From NCBI RefSeq assembly GCF_001194135.2, contig NC_068985.1, positions 64,545,886 to 64,581,890 on the forward strand: 36,005 nucleotides of DNA, read 5' to 3'. Position numbers and translations under genes: made by a program. The notes below the pieces were generated by a model. It was given only the letters and a program-made list of their open reading frames with translations. It was not told the DNA's origin and searched no databases. This document shows positions 4,190-36,005 of the stretch, one piece after another. Within the stretch, counting starts at the first letter, position 1. Each line of letters starts with the position of its first letter. This DNA comes from Octopus bimaculoides. Its lineage: Eukaryota.

Positions 4190-4237
4190 TATTATTATTT
4201 ATTATTGTTATTATTATTATTATTATTATTATTATTA
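4190..4237. repeat. (ATT)n microsatellite at the 3' junction of an R4/Dong copy
   Basis: Direct reading; abuts the 3' UTR at 4238. Confidence 0.95.
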
Positions 4238-5255
4238 GTTTTTCTTCTTTCTATTTTATTTTCATTTCTTGCTGGGTGTCTTTCCAACACCTAAGGCAGA
4301 GAAACTTACTGTATAAATTGATAGGCCATTAAAATAAACACACCAGATTGTTCATTTACAAAGTGAAGTCATATGAGAGAAAAAAAAGAAAAAAGGAAAT
4401 AAAAAGAAGAAAAATAAGAAAAAATTTACATAGGTTATAATTGCTCTCAAAGTGACAATGCTCTCAATACGAGCGACGTACTAGTTAAAACAATCATTTG
4501 CACTTCTTTCATAGGTGGTAGGTCAGGGATCATTCACAAATGATTTTCAGTTCCGTTTTTGACCATTCTAAGTGCTCCTGCAATCACCAGTATTGTAACC
4601 GCCTTGAGATACTACATTTTTTCGATTTCAATGAGCAAATCTTTATATTTTCTGAGTTTGACAAATTCTTTTGCCGAGATATTATGATCGCAAGAAATAT
4701 TCACGTCAATCAATGAACAGACTTTATTGTTTTAGTCTTTCTCAACAATATTCAGTTTATTAGCTTTGGTAGTTCTCTCCGTATGTAATCGAAAGTCCTA
4801 AAGAAGCGTTACAATTTCTTCCTCAGTTACGGCCTTAGGTTGGTGCTTATGCCCATTTGTCAACAGTTTTGACTTTATAATACCGACATATTAACCAGTG
4901 TAGATATTGACCAACTCTGTCATGTCATGAATTATACACTACTTATACTAAAACTTTACATCCAGAGATTAGGTGGTCCACTGTTTCAATCTCATTATTA
5001 CAGCATGGCCACTTTAAGTCTGCTCCATTTTTCACTACATTGGCTTGGTAGTTCCAAGTCAATACGCTTTGATCTTGAGCAGCTAAGATGAAACCTTCGT
5101 TCTCTGCCCAGAACTTCGTACTCACTGATGGCGGTGCTTCTGGTTAACATCAGCTTGTTTGCAACAGGCCAAATATTTGCCATGCAGAGATTTCTGCTAG
5201 CACCTACCAGTTCATGTGCTTTTTGTTTCTTGCCAATGATTTCATCTTCTCTGCA
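4238..5255 (-). mobile_element. R4-clade (Dong-like) LINE, 5'-truncated: zinc knuckle, RLE domain and 3' UTR
   Basis: Broken minus-strand frames read ENEGFILAAQDQS, CC..ETVDHLISGC, HDRVGQYLHW, CSLIDVNISCDHNISAKEFVKLRKYKDLLIEIEK and VIAGALRMV. Flanked on both sides by (AAT)n. Confidence 0.88.
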
Positions 5256-5324
5256 ATTATTAATATTATTATTATTATTATTATTATTATTATTATTATT
5301 ATTATTATTATTATTATTATTATT
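5256..5324. repeat. (ATT)n microsatellite
   Basis: Direct reading; separates the Dong 5' truncation from the 3' end of X copy 1. Confidence 0.97.
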
Positions 5325-5382
5325 GAGTGACAGTGCAGTGCATACCATCAAAGTGACATTGGGGTAAGATATATGAAGTCCA
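5325..5382 (-). mobile_element. Family X retroposon, copy 1 (3'-terminal ~58 bp only)
   Basis: GAGTGACAGTGCAGTGCATACCATCAAAGTGACATTGGGGTAAGATATATGAAGTCCA matches the starts of 12351 and 22092. Confidence 0.85.
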
Positions 5383-5384
5383 AG

Positions 5385-5511
5385 AATAATAATAATAATA
5401 ATAATAATAATAATAATAATAATAATAATAATAATAATAATAATTATTATTATTATTATTATTATTATTATTATTATTATTATTATTATTATTGTTGTTG
5501 TTGTTGTTGTT
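5385..5511. repeat. (AAT)n-(ATT)n inverted microsatellite followed by (GTT)n
   Basis: (AAT)n 5385-5443, (ATT)n 5444-5493, (GTT)n 5494-5511. Confidence 0.95.
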
Positions 5512-5541
5512 ATAGGCTGCGGAGTTGTAAGCACATGTTTT

Positions 5542-32132: not shown

Positions 32133-32409
32133 NNNNNNNNNNNNNNNNNNNNNNNNNNNNNNNNNNNNNNNNNNNNNNNNNNNNNNNNNNNNNNNNNNNN
32201 NNNNNNNNNNNNNNNNNNNNNNNNNNNNNNNNNNNNNNNNNNNNNNNNNNNNNNNNNNNNNNNNNNNNNNNNNNNNNNNNNNNNNNNNNNNNNNNNNNNN
32301 NNNNNNNNNNNNNNNNNNNNNNNNNNNNNNTATATATATATATATATATATATATGGGAGAATATACAAATAATAACAACAGACGAGGACAGGTGGTGTA
32401 AATAACAAA

Positions 32410-32665
32410 AGTATATATTAGTATGACGCTCGGGAATACGGAAAGTCTTTGACGTTTCGAGCTACGCTCTTCAACAGAAAGAATACGGAGACAAGGAGAA
32501 AAACACGGAGAAAAAAATTGAATAGTGTTCAAAAACAACAACAAAAGTCAGAGAGAAGTGAAGGAACAACGAACATGGTGTATTAGTTTAACACTAAAAT
32601 AAAATAGGAGAGTCTTTACCGTTTCAAACATTTGCTCTTGTACAGAAAGGAATGAAGAGAGAAAA
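32410..32665 (-). mobile_element. Tandem hammerhead-like motif, probably a Penelope-like element terminal-repeat remnant
   Basis: Minus strand 32477-32451 reads CTGTTGA-A-GAGC-GTA-GCTC-GAAA-CGTC. A second, degraded unit lies 167 bp away (AGTCTTT at 32444 and 32611). No GIY-YIG or RT ORF seen. Confidence 0.5.
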
Positions 32666-33048
32666 CAGATGAAGAAAGGGGGGAAATGGAAAGAAAAAGA
32701 AAAGAACCTGTCTGGATTACCGGTAGCACACGTTGAACTGACCGTTAGGAAGGATGTGGATGGAGACAAGGGTGGAAAGGGAGACAACAGTGACATAGCT
32801 AAAGTGTGTGCGCGCAAGCATGTGTGTATATGTGAGAATAATGTCTGCATGTTTATATGTGTGTATGAGTGAGCGCGTGATATGTATGTCTGGTCAAGCA
32901 CGTGTGTGAGTATGAAGATTATGAGAGCGTTAGTATGTATACGTAGGGGAGCGTGAGTGTGTGTATGTGTGAGTAAACAAGTACATGGCCGTGTGTGGAG
33001 CGATGTTTTTTATATTTTTAGTTTTATCATTTTATTACCATTATGTTT

Positions 33049-33098
33049 ATTACTTATTATTGTTGTTATTATTATTATTATTATTATTATTATTATTA
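33049..33098. repeat. (ATT)n with GTT variants, directly 5' of Tx1 copy D
   Basis: Direct reading. Confidence 0.92.
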
Positions 33099-33099
33099 A

Positions 33100-36005
33100 T
33101 ATTTGCGTAGTCCATTGGATGTGTTACGAATGCTCCAAGTAAGTCCTTATGAAAACAATTGTTTACTCCCGTTTGGTGCCGTTTTTTCGATTTACATTTT
33201 GTTCCAAGTTGTTAATAGAAACACCAGGAATCTGTCTCTGCGTTTCTGTGTTTGTTTGGCACCTCGCGGACCACCAAATATATTGGCTCACCAAATACGT
33301 TCTGTTGGCGTTTATTCATATACAATTCAACAAGATGGTGGAGCGCATCTTAAAAGAGTTAAGAAAACAAATTACCCCTCCTGCAGCTCTTGTGACTACT
33401 GGATATTTCCATCCCCTTCCCTCCGTTACTGGCAACAATACAGGAGAGGGAGAGGACAAAAGGGAGGAAGAAAAAGTACAAAGCCCACCTCGTAGTAGCA
33501 GCAATCGCGACATCGACAACAGCAGTGGTAGAGCTGAGAACAGTAGCAGCAGTAGTGGTAGTGGTAGCAACAACGCGAGAAACACCAGCAGTAGCAGCGG
33601 TGGCAGGGACAGTAGTAGCAGAGATAGCGTTTTCGTTAACAATGCTACGAATTTTAGCAGAAAAAATAATGCTACAATTGAAGGCAGAGTGGAAGAAAAT
33701 AGCGGTGACGGTGGTGGTGAGAGTGGAAACGGTGGAAGTGGCCACAACTCCACCACGACCAACTACAATAACAACAATTGCAGTAACAACAGCAACAAAA
33801 ACAATAATAAAAATAAAAGTTTTGCTGATATAGCGAACACAAAGAACGAAATGTTTGCCATCGCACTCAATGACAAAACACTCGAACTCTCAAAACCGAA
33901 AGACATCATTAAATTTGAGGCAGATAAGGCAGTAGTGCTTGTATCTCGCGAAATAATAGAGGCAAAAGAGAAGACAGTCTATTTTAGATGCGTATCATGC
34001 AAAAATAGGAGAGCTGAAATAGCCTCCATCAGCCATGTTTAGAAGGCCCTCAGAGAAATTTTAATAGACGTGGCCCATATACAGAGAGGGAGGCAGTTTA
34101 CCAGCATTGAGGGCCTCTATAAAAGCGAGGACCTTGTGCAAAGACATGCAGTGTCACCCCAGTGTACTGAGAAGTGGGTCCTGTATCCCACCTACCTCTC
34201 AAAGAGAACGGCCAGAATTAGGATAAATGGCATGTCACTGCACGTAATTGGGTGGATTGTCACCTGGAGTCACTCTTGAATGTAAAAAGGAGTGACAGGT
34301 AGAACTGCTGCGGGATCAACTTGGAAATATTAACCCGTGTAAAAGCAGAAAGTAACCGCCCAATAGGGTGGAACTGCGTGTCGTCGTGGAAGGCATGGAG
34401 CCAAGATCTGTGGAGTCACAAGCCACATGAGAGCCTTCTCCCCACCCCCAAAATTGAGAGGTACGCGGCCACACCTGCAACCTACATCGCACCCCAACAA
34501 CAATAGAAACCTTTTTAATAAAACGGTAGCTTCATCTCCAACAACAGATGCATGCGAACACCATACAATGGAGAAAACACCCAAGGTATCTTTCAAACCA
34601 GCCCCACTCACCATCTCTCTCTCTCTCTCTCAAGCATACACTCACGCCAACATACTCACGCTATCACAGACACAATCACACTCCTCGAGACAGATCCTAC
34701 AGACACTAGTCCCTCCTCATCCCGTAAGATGCGGGGTTCTGCGAAATGCCGATAACAGCCGAAAACAGAGCTGCGCAAGAGAGAAGTTTCTGGGGCGATA
34801 TGGTCTGTCCTTCGAGCTTTATTTTCATATGCCAGACTTGTTTGGTGGTCTCTTGGCAGACGTCTACCACAAATGGCAGCAGAATGGAAGAATTCCCACT
34901 GCTGTGTGCCGTGTAGTCGTGGGGAACAAAATTGATAATTTTAGGCCCATAACTCTGCTGAATACAGATTATAAAATTTTGGTCAAGATGTTAGCCAAGA
35001 GATTAGCGCTTGTCGTCGATAAATTGGTTGGTGACGCGCAGACATGCGCTATCGCAAACAGAACTATCCACAACAACCTCCACCTCACGCGCTACATCAT
35101 AGAGCATGGGTAAGGAACCTGGCATGTGTGGGATCCTGATCAATTTGGATCAGTCGAAAGCTTTTAATGGCGTCGACCACCAATACTCAGAGGCTGTTCT
35201 CGTGGCAGAGGGTTTCGTTCCCGTTTTCAGAGGCTGGATTGTTGCAATGTACAGCGACACCTGTTCGGTGGTCAAAGTAAATGGTCACATATGGGAATCA
35301 TTTAGCATCGCTCGTTCGGTCTGTCAAAGATGCCCACTCTCTCCTCTTATGCACGTGTTGGCCCTCGAGCCATTGCTGCAGAAGCTGGATGTTTCGAGGG
35401 GCATCCCGTGTGATCTAGGATGCGGAAGGTTCGTGTCGAGATGGTCAGCACTGCTCTAAGGGAGTACGAAGCGGTGCAACCAAGAGAAGTCGGTGGGTCT
35501 GCAGCTCGGCACCTGGAGAGATGCATCCATGCCAACAGACAGTGTTGTAGGGCGCTGGACGGAAGGATCGGTTAAATTGCTCAGGGTCTGGTTTAGTCCA
35601 GACCACCAGGTGGACAAGAACTGGGGGAAAGTGATGAGCAGGGTAGCCAATCTCACCCAGAAATGGGTACAGAGGAAGCTGTCCCTGAAGGGTCGGGCGG
35701 AGGTGGTGAATGCGTACATCGCTTCCGTCATCTACTACCGCCTGACCGTCGTCCCTTGCCCCACTTCGTGCCTGATAAAGTTGGAGCGCTTGCTCTTCCA
35801 CTTTCTATGGAACGGACGTGTTCCGCTCATCAGACGGTCCATCTGCTGTCAACAGCCGCTGAGTGGAAGACTGGACAAGTCGTTGCTAATGATGCGCATA
35901 CATGTATTGAGGATGCGACATTTCCAACGTTTCCTTAACGGGTCGCCGTTCGTCAAACGGGACTTTCCGCAGCTCGTCTCGTTGACGGAGATACAGTCCT
36001 GGGTC
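33100..36005 (+). mobile_element. Tx1/L1-clade LINE copy D: ORF1 and RT/post-RT; APE deleted; runs off the window
   Basis: ORF1 (probable ATG 33335, premature stop at 34042) has an S/N/G-rich spacer and a degenerate knuckle, ICGVTSHMRAFSP. RT motifs RPITLLNTDYKILVKMLAKRL, QTCAIANRTIHNNL, LINLDQSKAFNGVDH and CPLSPL, then SVIYYRLTVVPCP..FHFLW. Confidence 0.85.

Follow-up and report, generated by a model that had tools for sequence, protein, structure and literature searches.

A putatively old, decayed cluster of two LINE kinds on opposite strands that meet at common trinucleotide repeats in Octopus bimaculoides

As is already known, (TAA)n is the target of the retrotransposon Dong in Bombyx mori, Anopheles gambiae and also in a snail, Biomphalaria glabrata; for Kibi and Koshi, APE-type LINEs of the Tx1 clade in fish, the targets are (TC)n and (TTC)n (PMC3812793). 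Dong-R4 and L1-Tx1 elements are abundant in octopus genomes (PMC13282606). Furthermore, TRAS and SART of Bombyx mori both insert into the telomeric (TTAGG)n repeats, one in the orientation opposite to the other (PMC7265360).

Here we analyzed a window of 36,005 nucleotides of O. bimaculoides (NC_068985.1, positions 64,545,886 to 64,581,890), in which coding pieces were mapped by tblastn with 240 reference proteins, and tracts by TRF and by reading the sequence. The window reads as an old, decayed cluster, and the observation of two LINE kinds on opposite strands, meeting at common trinucleotide repeats, largely holds. By tblastn, all RLE-LINE coding pieces were on the minus strand (4462-5113, 12803-15281, 15366-16153 with 18126-20065, 22977-23878, 24057-24442, 24640-25885, and 27722-29023) and all Tx1-like coding pieces on the plus strand (7809-9843, 11081-12040, 26940-27554, and 34754-36005), to which tblastx added plus-strand pieces at 26068-26760 and 167-607. 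RTE-like elements and SINEs in the window are represented on both strands. The minus-strand features are as follows.

4186-4237, minus: (TAA)17, the tail of Dong-like copy a (TRF, sequence)
4238-5255, minus: copy a, C-terminal RLE part and 3'UTR, 5'-truncated (tblastn, P0027 aa 511-724; homology shown for 4462-5116 only)
5256-5384, minus: X1, the final 60 bp of X (5325-5384) and a (TAA)23 tail (5256-5324) (blastn, 92.7% to 12285-12408)
12351-12794, minus: X2, ~450-bp non-coding element with (TAA)n tail (blastn, 83% to 22064-22551)
12797-15282, minus: Dong-like copy b, RT and CCHC, with X2 in place of the RLE (tblastn)
15283-15354, minus: (TAA)24 tail of copy c (TRF, sequence)
15355-20703, minus: Dong-like copy c, the most complete copy (tblastn, P0012 aa 4-610 and P0027), with RLE at 15386-15700 (RPD..D..K motif readable), RT at 18260-19534, and N-terminal ORF up to 20703
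16155-18125, minus: nested RTE-like LINE fragment interrupting copy c, with an (ATG)n(ACG)n tail and two assembly gaps inside (Pfam RVT_1)
22064-22551, minus: X3 (22092-22551) and a short (TAA)9 tail (blastn, TRF, sequence)
22705-23675, minus: Dong-like copy d, CCHC and RLE (aa 451-726); its (TAA)25 tail occupies 22705-22778
23718-23900, minus: d2, 183-bp Dong fragment, 93% identity with copy f (nucleotide match, tblastn)
24075-24441, minus: Dong-like copy e, RT aa ~283-403 (tblastn matches stop at 24442)
24442-24572, minus: (GAA)n tail belonging to copy f; the repeat contains a gap of 34 N (TRF, sequence)
24573-25885, minus: Dong-like copy f, subfamily of c (80% identity) yet (GAA)n-tailed (blastn, tblastn, sequence)
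27560-29211, minus: Dong-like copy g (tblastn; homology shown for 27590-29023)

On their predicted proteins, the minus-strand LINEs are of the RLE type and Dong/R4-like, with RT, CCHC finger and restriction-like endonuclease following one another in a single ORF. The best solved relatives of the protein are R2 proteins (E 1e-32 versus 1e-17 for L1 ORF2p), and the CCHC and RPD..D..K motifs, both readable in the translations, aligned to these R2 relatives. Likeness to known Dong extends to the element-sense (TAA)n 3' end and to the (TAA)n-flanked copies, one known host being likewise a mollusc; in contrast, a (GAA)n subfamily, a TAA-tailed copy (e/d) within a (GAA)n tail, and a non-coding partner X that shares the tail type distinguish this locus. 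Moreover, no database relative exceeds 45-50% protein identity, and the clade is a putative one, assigned by similarity.

As the original prediction had it, every R4/Dong piece (tblastn) and all three X copies (blastn) lie on the minus strand. Microsatellites were present at every coordinate that had been listed, and all 7/7 intact 3' ends carry element-sense tails, (TAA)n on six and (GAA)n on one. The junction at 29213 is on the 5' side of copy g, and Dong homology stops 188 bp short of it. Homology of copy b reaches 15278, at most 4 bp from the tail of copy c, and the (GAA)n tail of copy f borders the start of copy e with no base between. Because these two 5'-truncated copies begin directly on the tail of an upstream copy, they point to insertion into the repeat, which supports the view that Dong-like elements act as (TAA)n/(GAA)n-targeting LINEs stacking head-to-tail. 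Two same-strand stacks are evident, namely c-(TAA)24-b/X2 and f-(GAA)n-e/d, where copy e is probably the 5' part of copy d, and X1-(TAA)23-a is probably a third. The 5' end of copy f, the 3' end of copy g, whose coding end opposes the truncated 3' side of the Tx1-like T3, and the 5' end of X3 touch no tract. Copy f is uninterrupted at 25324/25325, the site equivalent to the RTE-like insertion in copy c. Regarding X, copies X2 and X3 have a common 5' boundary, and neither RLE coding sequence in X2 nor any match in tRNA and Rfam searches of X2 was found; X is not Dong coding sequence, but a non-autonomous element that shares the (TAA)n tail type with the Dong-like LINEs.

The plus-strand elements and the remaining tracts are given below.

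167-607, plus: T0, Tx1-like ORF1 remnant (tblastx to the ORF1 of an Argonauta element, 24% over 147 aa; weak T4 ORF1 match)
5385-5511: compound tract (AAT)20 / (ATT)17 / (GTT)6 (TRF, sequence)
5527-6235: palindrome; arms 5527-5761 and 6235-6007 surround a (TTAGGG)n-like center 5894-5982 (arm alignment score 171)
6236-9842, plus: Tx1-like copy A, with ORF1 from ATG 6335, APE 7806-8552, and RT 8675-9843, ending at RT residue ~381 (tblastn P0203/P0121, tblastx)
10004-12284, plus: Tx1-like copy B, with APE 10463-11698, RT deleted, C-terminus 11710-12037, and 3'UTR (tblastn, tblastx, sequence)
12285-12350: (ATT)22 tract common to the 3' ends of copy B (plus) and X2 (minus) (TRF 100% pure, sequence)
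26068-27554, plus: Tx1-like T3, truncated at both ends, with APE in two pieces, 26068-26226 and 26602-26760, and residues 318-532 (RT/C-terminal) at 26940-27554 (tblastn, tblastx)
29212-29315: compound tract (CTT)15(TAG)20, 5' of copy g (TRF, sequence)
33020-33102: (ATT)n tract, left degenerate, right pure, directly upstream of T4 (TRF)
33103-36005, plus: Tx1-like T4, with 5'UTR, ORF1 33335-34276, APE deleted, and RT from 34754, leaving the window (tblastn, tblastx, alignment)

From its predicted ORF1, APE, RT and zf-RVT, the plus-strand LINE is of the L1/Tx1 type. All Tx1-like coding remnants are plus-strand, four within the range of the original prediction and a fifth, T0, outside it. The APE, RT and zf-RVT architecture resembles that of Kibi and Koshi, as does a 3' end joined directly to a simple repeat without poly(A), whereas the repeat is here (ATT)n, or (ATC)n in relatives; furthermore, at most one composite insertion here has the repeat on both flanks, and close relatives have ordinary target-site duplications (TSDs). 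A Tx1-like 3' end occurs only once in the window; it finishes ...GGCCAATAAAGAAACG at 12284, with a hairpin GGCCAttcTGGCC and then AATAAAGAAACG at the terminus of copy B, and is followed by (ATT)22 and then the X 3' end, so that the tract was rightly described as common to the Tx1 and X tails. This Tx1-like 3' end has a sense AATAAA.

Clean Tx1 junctions in the window amount to this 3' end and one 5' junction, that of T4, whose homology to the other copy starts at most about 3 bp from the (ATT)n tract. The claim that Tx1 ends abut (ATT)n stood for these two, but not as described for 5444-5511; at the A/B junction (9842-10004) and both T3 ends, no repeats were found. The tract at 5444-5511 adjoins a palindrome in which, as its alignments indicate, the Tx1-like 5' region is duplicated in inverted, head-to-head arrangement: the T4 5'UTR scored 39 against the reverse complement of the left arm (shuffles 24.5±4.6), and T4 33208-33339 aligns to 6204-6339. 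With the Tx1 5'UTR thus present in the left arm in inverted, minus-strand form, the left border of copy A is not a canonical 5' end.

In the Drosophila I factor, a (TAA)n 3' tail of 4-7 units is made by the element's own reverse transcriptase, without repeat targeting. It provides a model for a reading in which tract specificity belongs to the Dong-like elements alone: the Tx1-like LINE would insert in the ordinary L1 style with a stuttered trinucleotide tail, and Dong would land there, producing the tail-to-tail junction at 12285; the plus-strand uniformity of Tx1 would then be coincidence. The I factor belongs to another clade, however, and its tail is short compared with the 22 to at least 29 units here. 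An independent Tx1-like copy on an unrelated contig (L004) ends ...GGCCAATAAAAGAAATC followed by (ATT)≥29, and shares 72-78% identity with the copies of the window, a range that these also show among themselves. In contrast, a relative in Argonauta has an ordinary AT-rich 17-bp TSD and one in Octopus sinensis (L006) was also recovered, both without tail or (ATT)n, while in the related copies L012 and L007 the tails are (ATC)n/(CAT)n and the 5' flanks non-repeat. Together with the bare A/B and T3 junctions, these relatives suggest that the Tx1 repeat may be a self-made tail, later used by Dong, and three to four independent Tx1 events would all fall on one strand by chance with a P of only 0.125-0.25. 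Against it stand the T4 5' junction on (ATT)n, the composite A+B, which has (ATT)17(GTT)6 to its left, (ATT)22 to its right and Dong elements beyond either side, and the position of every Tx1 piece between Dong stacks, with 0 parallel to Dong. We regard this reading as possible but doubtful.

Complete opposite segregation has a P of 6e-5 counting 15 pieces, and of 0.004-0.008 when stacked and composite pieces are merged into 8-9 events, both post hoc. A family-specific strand bias could also come, independently of microsatellites, from selection in a long host intron or transcription unit that purges the harmful orientation: sense depletion of human L1 within genes is documented (PMC3812793), and sense copies carrying the AATAAA of the Tx1-like 3' end would be selected against within a gene. 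Such selection should nevertheless favor one common orientation for the two LINE kinds rather than opposite ones, and it leaves unexplained the direct abutment on tails; RTE-like and SINE copies are on both strands, and sampled non-TE ORFs had no significant Pfam match, a sub-threshold match at 164-634 being Tx1-like ORF1. This alternative is, consequently, improbable.

The gap-rich assembly counts against the two-clade explanation, as the window holds seven N gaps, two of them within microsatellites: 24529-24562 within (TTC)n, with TTC on either side, and 31276-31285 within (TA)n. Gaps 16373-17038 and 17473-17566 are both within one colinear minus-strand RTE-like LINE nested in copy c, whose 5' end is hidden because gap 20704-21080 parts its N-terminal ORF from a SINE; gap 26374-26473 is within T3, adjoining an inserted RTE 3' fragment, and 32133-32330 is flanked by a SINE and (TA)n. 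Apart from the length of the (TTC)n tail, they touch none of the junctions of the argument. Contigs ending in the same trinucleotide repeat and joined through it would place (TAA)n- and (ATT)n-tailed elements tail-to-tail and like-tailed ones head-to-tail, and several tracts are 100% pure over 50-70 bp. However, the copies within a stack have diverged (70-83% identity) and are each truncated at a specific point, unlike collapsed duplicates, the unrelated L004 contig likewise passes from a Tx1 end to (ATT)n, and ordinary reads are long enough to span the tracts, so that an artifact behind part of the pattern appears very improbable. Segmental duplication of an X, Dong and Tx1 unit, which would make the orientations non-independent and draws on similar X2-c and X3-f distances (about 3.0 and about 2.6 kb) and identities (83% and 80%), is scarcely credible and already largely refuted by self-comparison of the window, given that the intervening b and d/e are not alignable as DNA, no Tx1 3' end flanks X3 on its left, and the tails are unlike, (TAA)n versus (GAA)n.

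We thus return to the reading in which the polarity of one trinucleotide class sets the orientation of both LINE kinds, to which we give an even chance. Dong-like LINEs and X insert by target-primed reverse transcription into (TAA)n/(GAA)n, including the tails of earlier copies, and the conserved Tx1-type 3' terminus is followed by (ATT)n, the same duplex as (TAA)n on the opposite strand. A plus-strand (ATT)n tract could prime the (UAA)n RNA tail of Dong from the plus strand only, and the (AUU)n RNA tail of Tx1 from the minus strand only. The composite A+B would most simply occupy the tail that separates X2 from X1 in a single Dong chain. The (AAT)20 block at 5385-5444, of opposite polarity and missing from the original prediction, counts against this polarity model. 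As for the proposal that both clades stack at the same oriented landing pads, the Dong half held, with copies b and e on upstream tails, and the Tx1 half only partly (12285, L004, and T4).

In brief, a two-clade polarized array is plausible, but only partly supported, and resembles TRAS and SART, in which two families share one strand-asymmetric tandem repeat and, in fixed opposite orientations, build interleaved arrays. Both of those are APE-type, R1-clade, telomeric elements with mapped nick sites, whereas here a putative RLE and APE pair would share an internal trinucleotide microsatellite, with the specificity of the second, Tx1-like, partner only putative; whether Tx1 actively prefers (ATT)n or only supplies a self-made (ATT)n tail for Dong divides the weight of the explanation about equally. 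If each insertion regenerates a tract of unchanged polarity, Dong would pile up on one strand and Tx1, using or supplying the tracts, on the other.

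The minus-strand reverse transcriptase (RT) was traced with the RT-containing read-through of the longest minus-strand ORFs, a query that yielded ~800 relatives at ≤50% identity, all of them carrying RVT_1 only; tblastn of the relatives' proteins on the window placed all RLE-LINE pieces on the minus strand. The relative reaching the C-terminus (P0027) matched R2 best among solved proteins (E 1e-32, with L1 ORF2p at 1e-17), R2 being the sole RLE-clade representative in the PDB for structure comparison among R4/Dong/Rex6/R2/NeSL/CRE/HERO. The P0027-R2 alignment takes in both the CCHC finger and the nuclease region (RPD...D...K); the two can be read in the window, the finger (CX2CX8HX4C, 23322-23648) as CRVCKQQNETIDHVVSMC and the PD-(D/E)XK motif of the RLE as RRPDLVVVD...IDFRVP...EKVAKYQDL at 15386-15700. 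C-terminal reference pieces located by tblastn support the order RT, CCHC finger, restriction-like endonuclease. As negative evidence, no APE was seen upstream of the Dong-like RT, and the APE parts of the reference proteins P0203, P0201 and P0215 match plus-strand copies only; Pfam gave no match for the N-terminal ORF (20068-20703) and is without a model for the RLE region. Given the CCHC and RPD...D...K motifs, the match to R2 and the lack of an APE upstream, the minus-strand elements are RLE-type LINEs, and this type together with (TAA)n ends is the Dong/R4 pattern, with membership of that clade probable.

Dong-like LINE copies and copies of the non-coding element X
4238-5255, minus strand, copy a, Dong-like
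5325-5384, minus strand, X1
12351-12794, minus strand, X2
12797-15282, minus strand, copy b, Dong-like
15355-20703, minus strand, copy c, Dong-like, split by an RTE-like LINE at 16155-18125
22092-22551, minus strand, X3
22779-24441, minus strand, copies d and e, Dong-like, enclosing the 183-bp piece d2 of subfamily c/f
24573-25885, minus strand, copy f, Dong-like
27560-29211, minus strand, copy g, Dong-like

The piece d2 (23718-23900) is 93% identical to 24832-25009 in copy f, 1 kb off, where whole copies of the subfamily share ~80%, a likeness pointing to gene conversion at the locus or to recent duplication of a short stretch. The RTE-like fragment in copy c (16155-18125, minus strand) has an (ATG)n(ACG)n tail, and an RTE-like 3' end 93% identical to it lies inverted at 26474-26531, on the plus strand within the Tx1-like piece T3; thus no strand rule holds for the RTE-like family here.

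Element X is non-coding, with a 5' boundary common to X2 and X3 and a (TAA)n 3' end, and looks like a non-autonomous passenger of Dong-type machinery. That X is the plain 3' end of copy b was rejected, since X holds no RLE coding and X2 and X3 have one 5' boundary, and a tRNA- or RNA-derived SINE was set aside as X had no match in the tRNA search or Rfam. At 12794-12803 the RLE of copy b is lost right where X2 starts, at the normal X 5' boundary; this chimeric join could have arisen by deletion, or by a switch of template in which X RNA was left for Dong RNA.

In element sense, the six (TAA)n 3' ends carry 17 (a), 23 (X1), 22 (X2/b), 24 (c), 9 (X3) and 25 (d) units, and copy f ends in (GAA)n rather than (TAA)n, so that the claim of (TAA)n or (GAA)n at intact Dong and X ends is borne out by six tails plus one. 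The 5' junctions tell more than the tails, because they report the target. Copy b keeps coding homology as far as 15278, and at 15283 the tail of copy c begins; the homology of copy e stops at 24442, precisely on the (GAA)n tail of copy f. These two abutments are the expected signature of insertion into a repeat, earlier tails included, and insertion into an oriented repeat gives one orientation per stack. Insertion of Dong into (TAA)n is established in silkworm, mosquito and snail (PMC3812793). Copies a and g lie 140-190 bp away from the X1 tail and an (AAG)15 tract, respectively, with no detectable homology in between; the 5' ends of X3 and f have no flanking repeat, and that of c is hidden by a gap. 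The (GAA)n tract of the f subfamily (24442-24572) hosts the TAA-tailed copy e/d, and 5' of copy g there is a compound tract, (CTT)15(TAG)20 (29212-29315). At 5385-5493, (AAT)20 runs straight into (ATT)17, with polarity flipping where the 60-bp X1 copy has its 5' end, a reversal not accounted for by simple insertion into a tract of one orientation.

For the plus strand, a second protein search returned L1/Tx1-type relatives with RVT_1 and zf-RVT, the longer ones also with Exo_endo_phos, and the pieces were mapped with the relatives' proteins and by tblastx of a complete element from Argonauta hians. L1/Tx1-type features are present: ORF1, followed by an ORF2 with an N-terminal APE, RT and a C-terminal zinc-binding domain. 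ORF1 lies at 33335-34276 and 6335-6998, the APE at 7806-8552 and 10463-11698 (P0203, PF03372), and RT with zf-RVT (PF13966) occurs in the relatives P0121-P0123. Octopus elements of this type are labelled L1-Tx1 in the literature (PMC13282606). The closest protein relatives come from Argonauta hians (57%) and short contigs (63-78%), with a relative in Octopus sinensis too, which points to an octopod source; exact-protein look-up found no record of the window ORF1 or of P0173.

Tx1-like LINE copies, all defective and with coding on the plus strand
167-607, plus strand, T0, ORF1, beyond the range of the original prediction
From 6335, plus strand, copy A, ORF1 from 6335, APE at 7806-8552, RT to 9842
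~10004-12284, plus strand, copy B, APE, C-terminus and 3'UTR, RT deleted
26068-27554, plus strand, T3
33103-36005, plus strand, T4, ORF1 present, APE deleted

In T4 the ORF1/linker is fused straight to the RT, and in B the APE is fused to the C-terminus.

The window has only one Tx1-like 3' end, ...TTCGGCCATTCTGGCCAATAAAGAAACG, which passes straight into (ATT)22, and this in turn adjoins the X2 3' end of the opposite strand; the tract at 12285-12350 is thus common to both 3' ends, as had been proposed. Outside the window, 3' ends were identified by a conserved terminal motif. L004, a contig with intact ORFs and 72-78% identity to the window's copies, ends in GGCCAATAAAAGAAATC and at least 29 units of (ATT) up to the contig end; L012 ends in GAAATC and (ATC)n, and L007 in GGAATC ATTATT (CAT)n. 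The O. sinensis end (L006) and two Argonauta ends are without a repeat, and L002, L009, L010 and L011 end short of the terminus. The full-length Argonauta element (L001, 6886-12649, 5.76 kb) has a perfect duplication of 17 bp, TATTTTTAAAATTTGTA, on either side, at 6869-6885 and 12650-12666, the mark of an ordinary L1-type insertion. The ends of B, L004, L012 and L007 indicate that the trinucleotide 3' repeat is a real feature of the subfamilies nearest the window. The 3'-end pattern had no match in the viral and metagenome contigs scanned and a single one in genome contigs, by chance, inside a bacterial gene; a protein-profile scan of metagenome contigs gave no confirmed relatives.

The terminus conserved among octopod copies (window 12253-12284; L004 ~1990-2016; L006 ~11040-11069; L001 12255-12283 and 12620-12649) has a short GC hairpin, in the window GGCCAttcTGGCC, and after it AATAAAGAAAYS, and may serve as the RT recognition element. 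The 3'UTR of the Argonauta element is doubled (12014-12283 and 12424-12649).

On the 5' side, the homology of T4 to another copy starts at 33103, ~3 bp past an (ATT)n tract, a position hard to get by chance. Of the ends predicted to abut (ATT)n, those at 12284 and 33103 do; at 5444-5511 the tract instead flanks the outer edge of a rearranged palindrome (5527-6235, ~710 bp), with arms ~75% alike and a (TTAGGG)n-like centre (5894-5982). The right arm runs on into the 5'UTR and ORF1 of A, and the left arm is the same sequence inverted; the T4 5'UTR aligns with its reverse complement at a score of 39 (shuffles 24.5±4.6), and this reading replaced that of 5512-6300 as an unrelated MITE. The palindrome looks as if a LINE 5' end had been duplicated in inverted, head-to-head fashion, with telomere-type repeats where the sequence turns back. 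Another interstitial tract of telomere-like sequence, (GTTAGG)n, occupies ~180 bp at 1989-2165, downstream of a pair of 85-bp direct repeats of 93% identity (1328-1412 and 1875-1957).

The composite of A and B (5512-12284) has (ATT)17(GTT)6 on its left and (ATT)22 on its right, with Dong-type elements outside both, and its simplest history would place it inside a tail between X2 and X1 of one Dong chain, c-b/X2-X1-a. Overall, a flanking repeat is seen 3' in B and L004 and 5' in T4 and the A+B composite; it is absent from the A/B join, from T3, flanked by the f 5' end and the g 3' end and with neither border repeat surviving, from the non-repeat 5' flanks of the 5'-truncated L007 and L012, and from the duplicated Argonauta site.

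The claimed strand rule holds for all Dong pieces and X (minus) and for all Tx1-like coding (plus), but not for the inverted left arm of the palindrome, one Tx1-derived piece that belongs to a rearranged 5' end and lies on the minus strand. As to chance and ALTERNATIVES, full segregation of the two kinds to opposite strands has P = 6e-5 when 15 pieces are counted and 0.004-0.008 with stacked and composite pieces merged, both post hoc. Of the nine AAT-class tracts, eight read (ATT)n in plus-strand sense, at this one locus where Dong is all minus and Tx1 coding all plus. Mis-joining of contigs through repeats is possible, though improbable. The window, 36,005 bp of eukaryotic DNA, has seven N runs, besides internal (TTAGGG)n-like tracts, one gap lying within (TTC)n (24529-24562), one within (TA)n (31276-31285), two within the single colinear RTE-like LINE nested in copy c, and the others over the 5' end of c, within T3 and between a SINE and (TA)n. 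None of the key junctions depends on a gap. Host-gene selection, which could bias strand, should drive both LINE kinds one way, not in opposite ways, and with RTE-like and SINE copies present on both strands, a strand bias affecting the region in general is disfavoured. Self-comparison of the window sequence led to the rejection of segmental duplication as an origin for the pattern.

The short SINE-like repeats (21081-21447, 30369-30551 and 31951-32132; two plus, one minus) end in ...GGAAACTGAAAGAAGCC, a further SINE-like stretch, at 21081-21245, carries a tail rich in (ACA/AT), and neither ARAGORN (bacterial settings) nor Rfam gave a tRNA for them.

In the stacking mechanism, the 3' end of the plus strand of an (ATT)n tract would pair with a (UAA)n RNA tail, giving Dong in minus orientation, and the (AAT)n 3' end of the minus strand of the same tract would pair with an (AUU)n RNA tail, giving Tx1 in plus orientation. 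After every insertion one or both flanks would keep a tract of the former polarity, so that orientation would be handed on as the array grows. The junctions show the Dong steps; the Tx1 step we infer from three junctions and one outside copy. The stacking interpretation of the original prediction, whose observations were mostly right, is partly supported, its Dong half by the b and e junctions; the ends examined do not establish repeat targeting for the wider Tx1-like family. The Argonauta and O. sinensis loci examined hold no Dong-like element and so no second case of antiparallel neighbours. The full proposal is that octopod RLE (Dong/R4) and APE (L1/Tx1) LINEs share the (TAA)n·(TTA)n duplex as their target, nick opposite strands and renew the tract with each insertion, so that a single seed microsatellite grows into a strictly strand-segregated two-clade array over tens of kb; we regard it as unlikely.

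Targeting of (TAA)n by Dong and of microsatellites by the Tx1 clade is already known (PMC3812793), and Dong-R4 and L1-Tx1 are major octopus LINEs, on whose targets the octopus papers are silent (PMC13282606). In silkworm telomeres, two families, TRAS and SART, share one repeat in opposite orientation (PMC7265360), fixed for each family; the window, a single locus, resembles this, and the two-clade array would, if the reading were true, be an internal-chromosome, cross-clade analogue of those telomeric arrays. The part that might be new is the sharing of an internal microsatellite by RLE and APE elements, and the novelty is modest unless a genome-wide test proves positive. Should the Dong half alone hold, the locus would be an ordinary though tidy case of known behaviour in a new host group. 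If both clades share one microsatellite in opposite senses, two unrelated endonuclease types would have converged on one target; tract polarity could then serve to predict the orientation of transposable elements and to date the order of their insertion, and a simple growth rule would follow for repeat-rich, strand-polarised transposon islands in the very repetitive genomes of octopuses.
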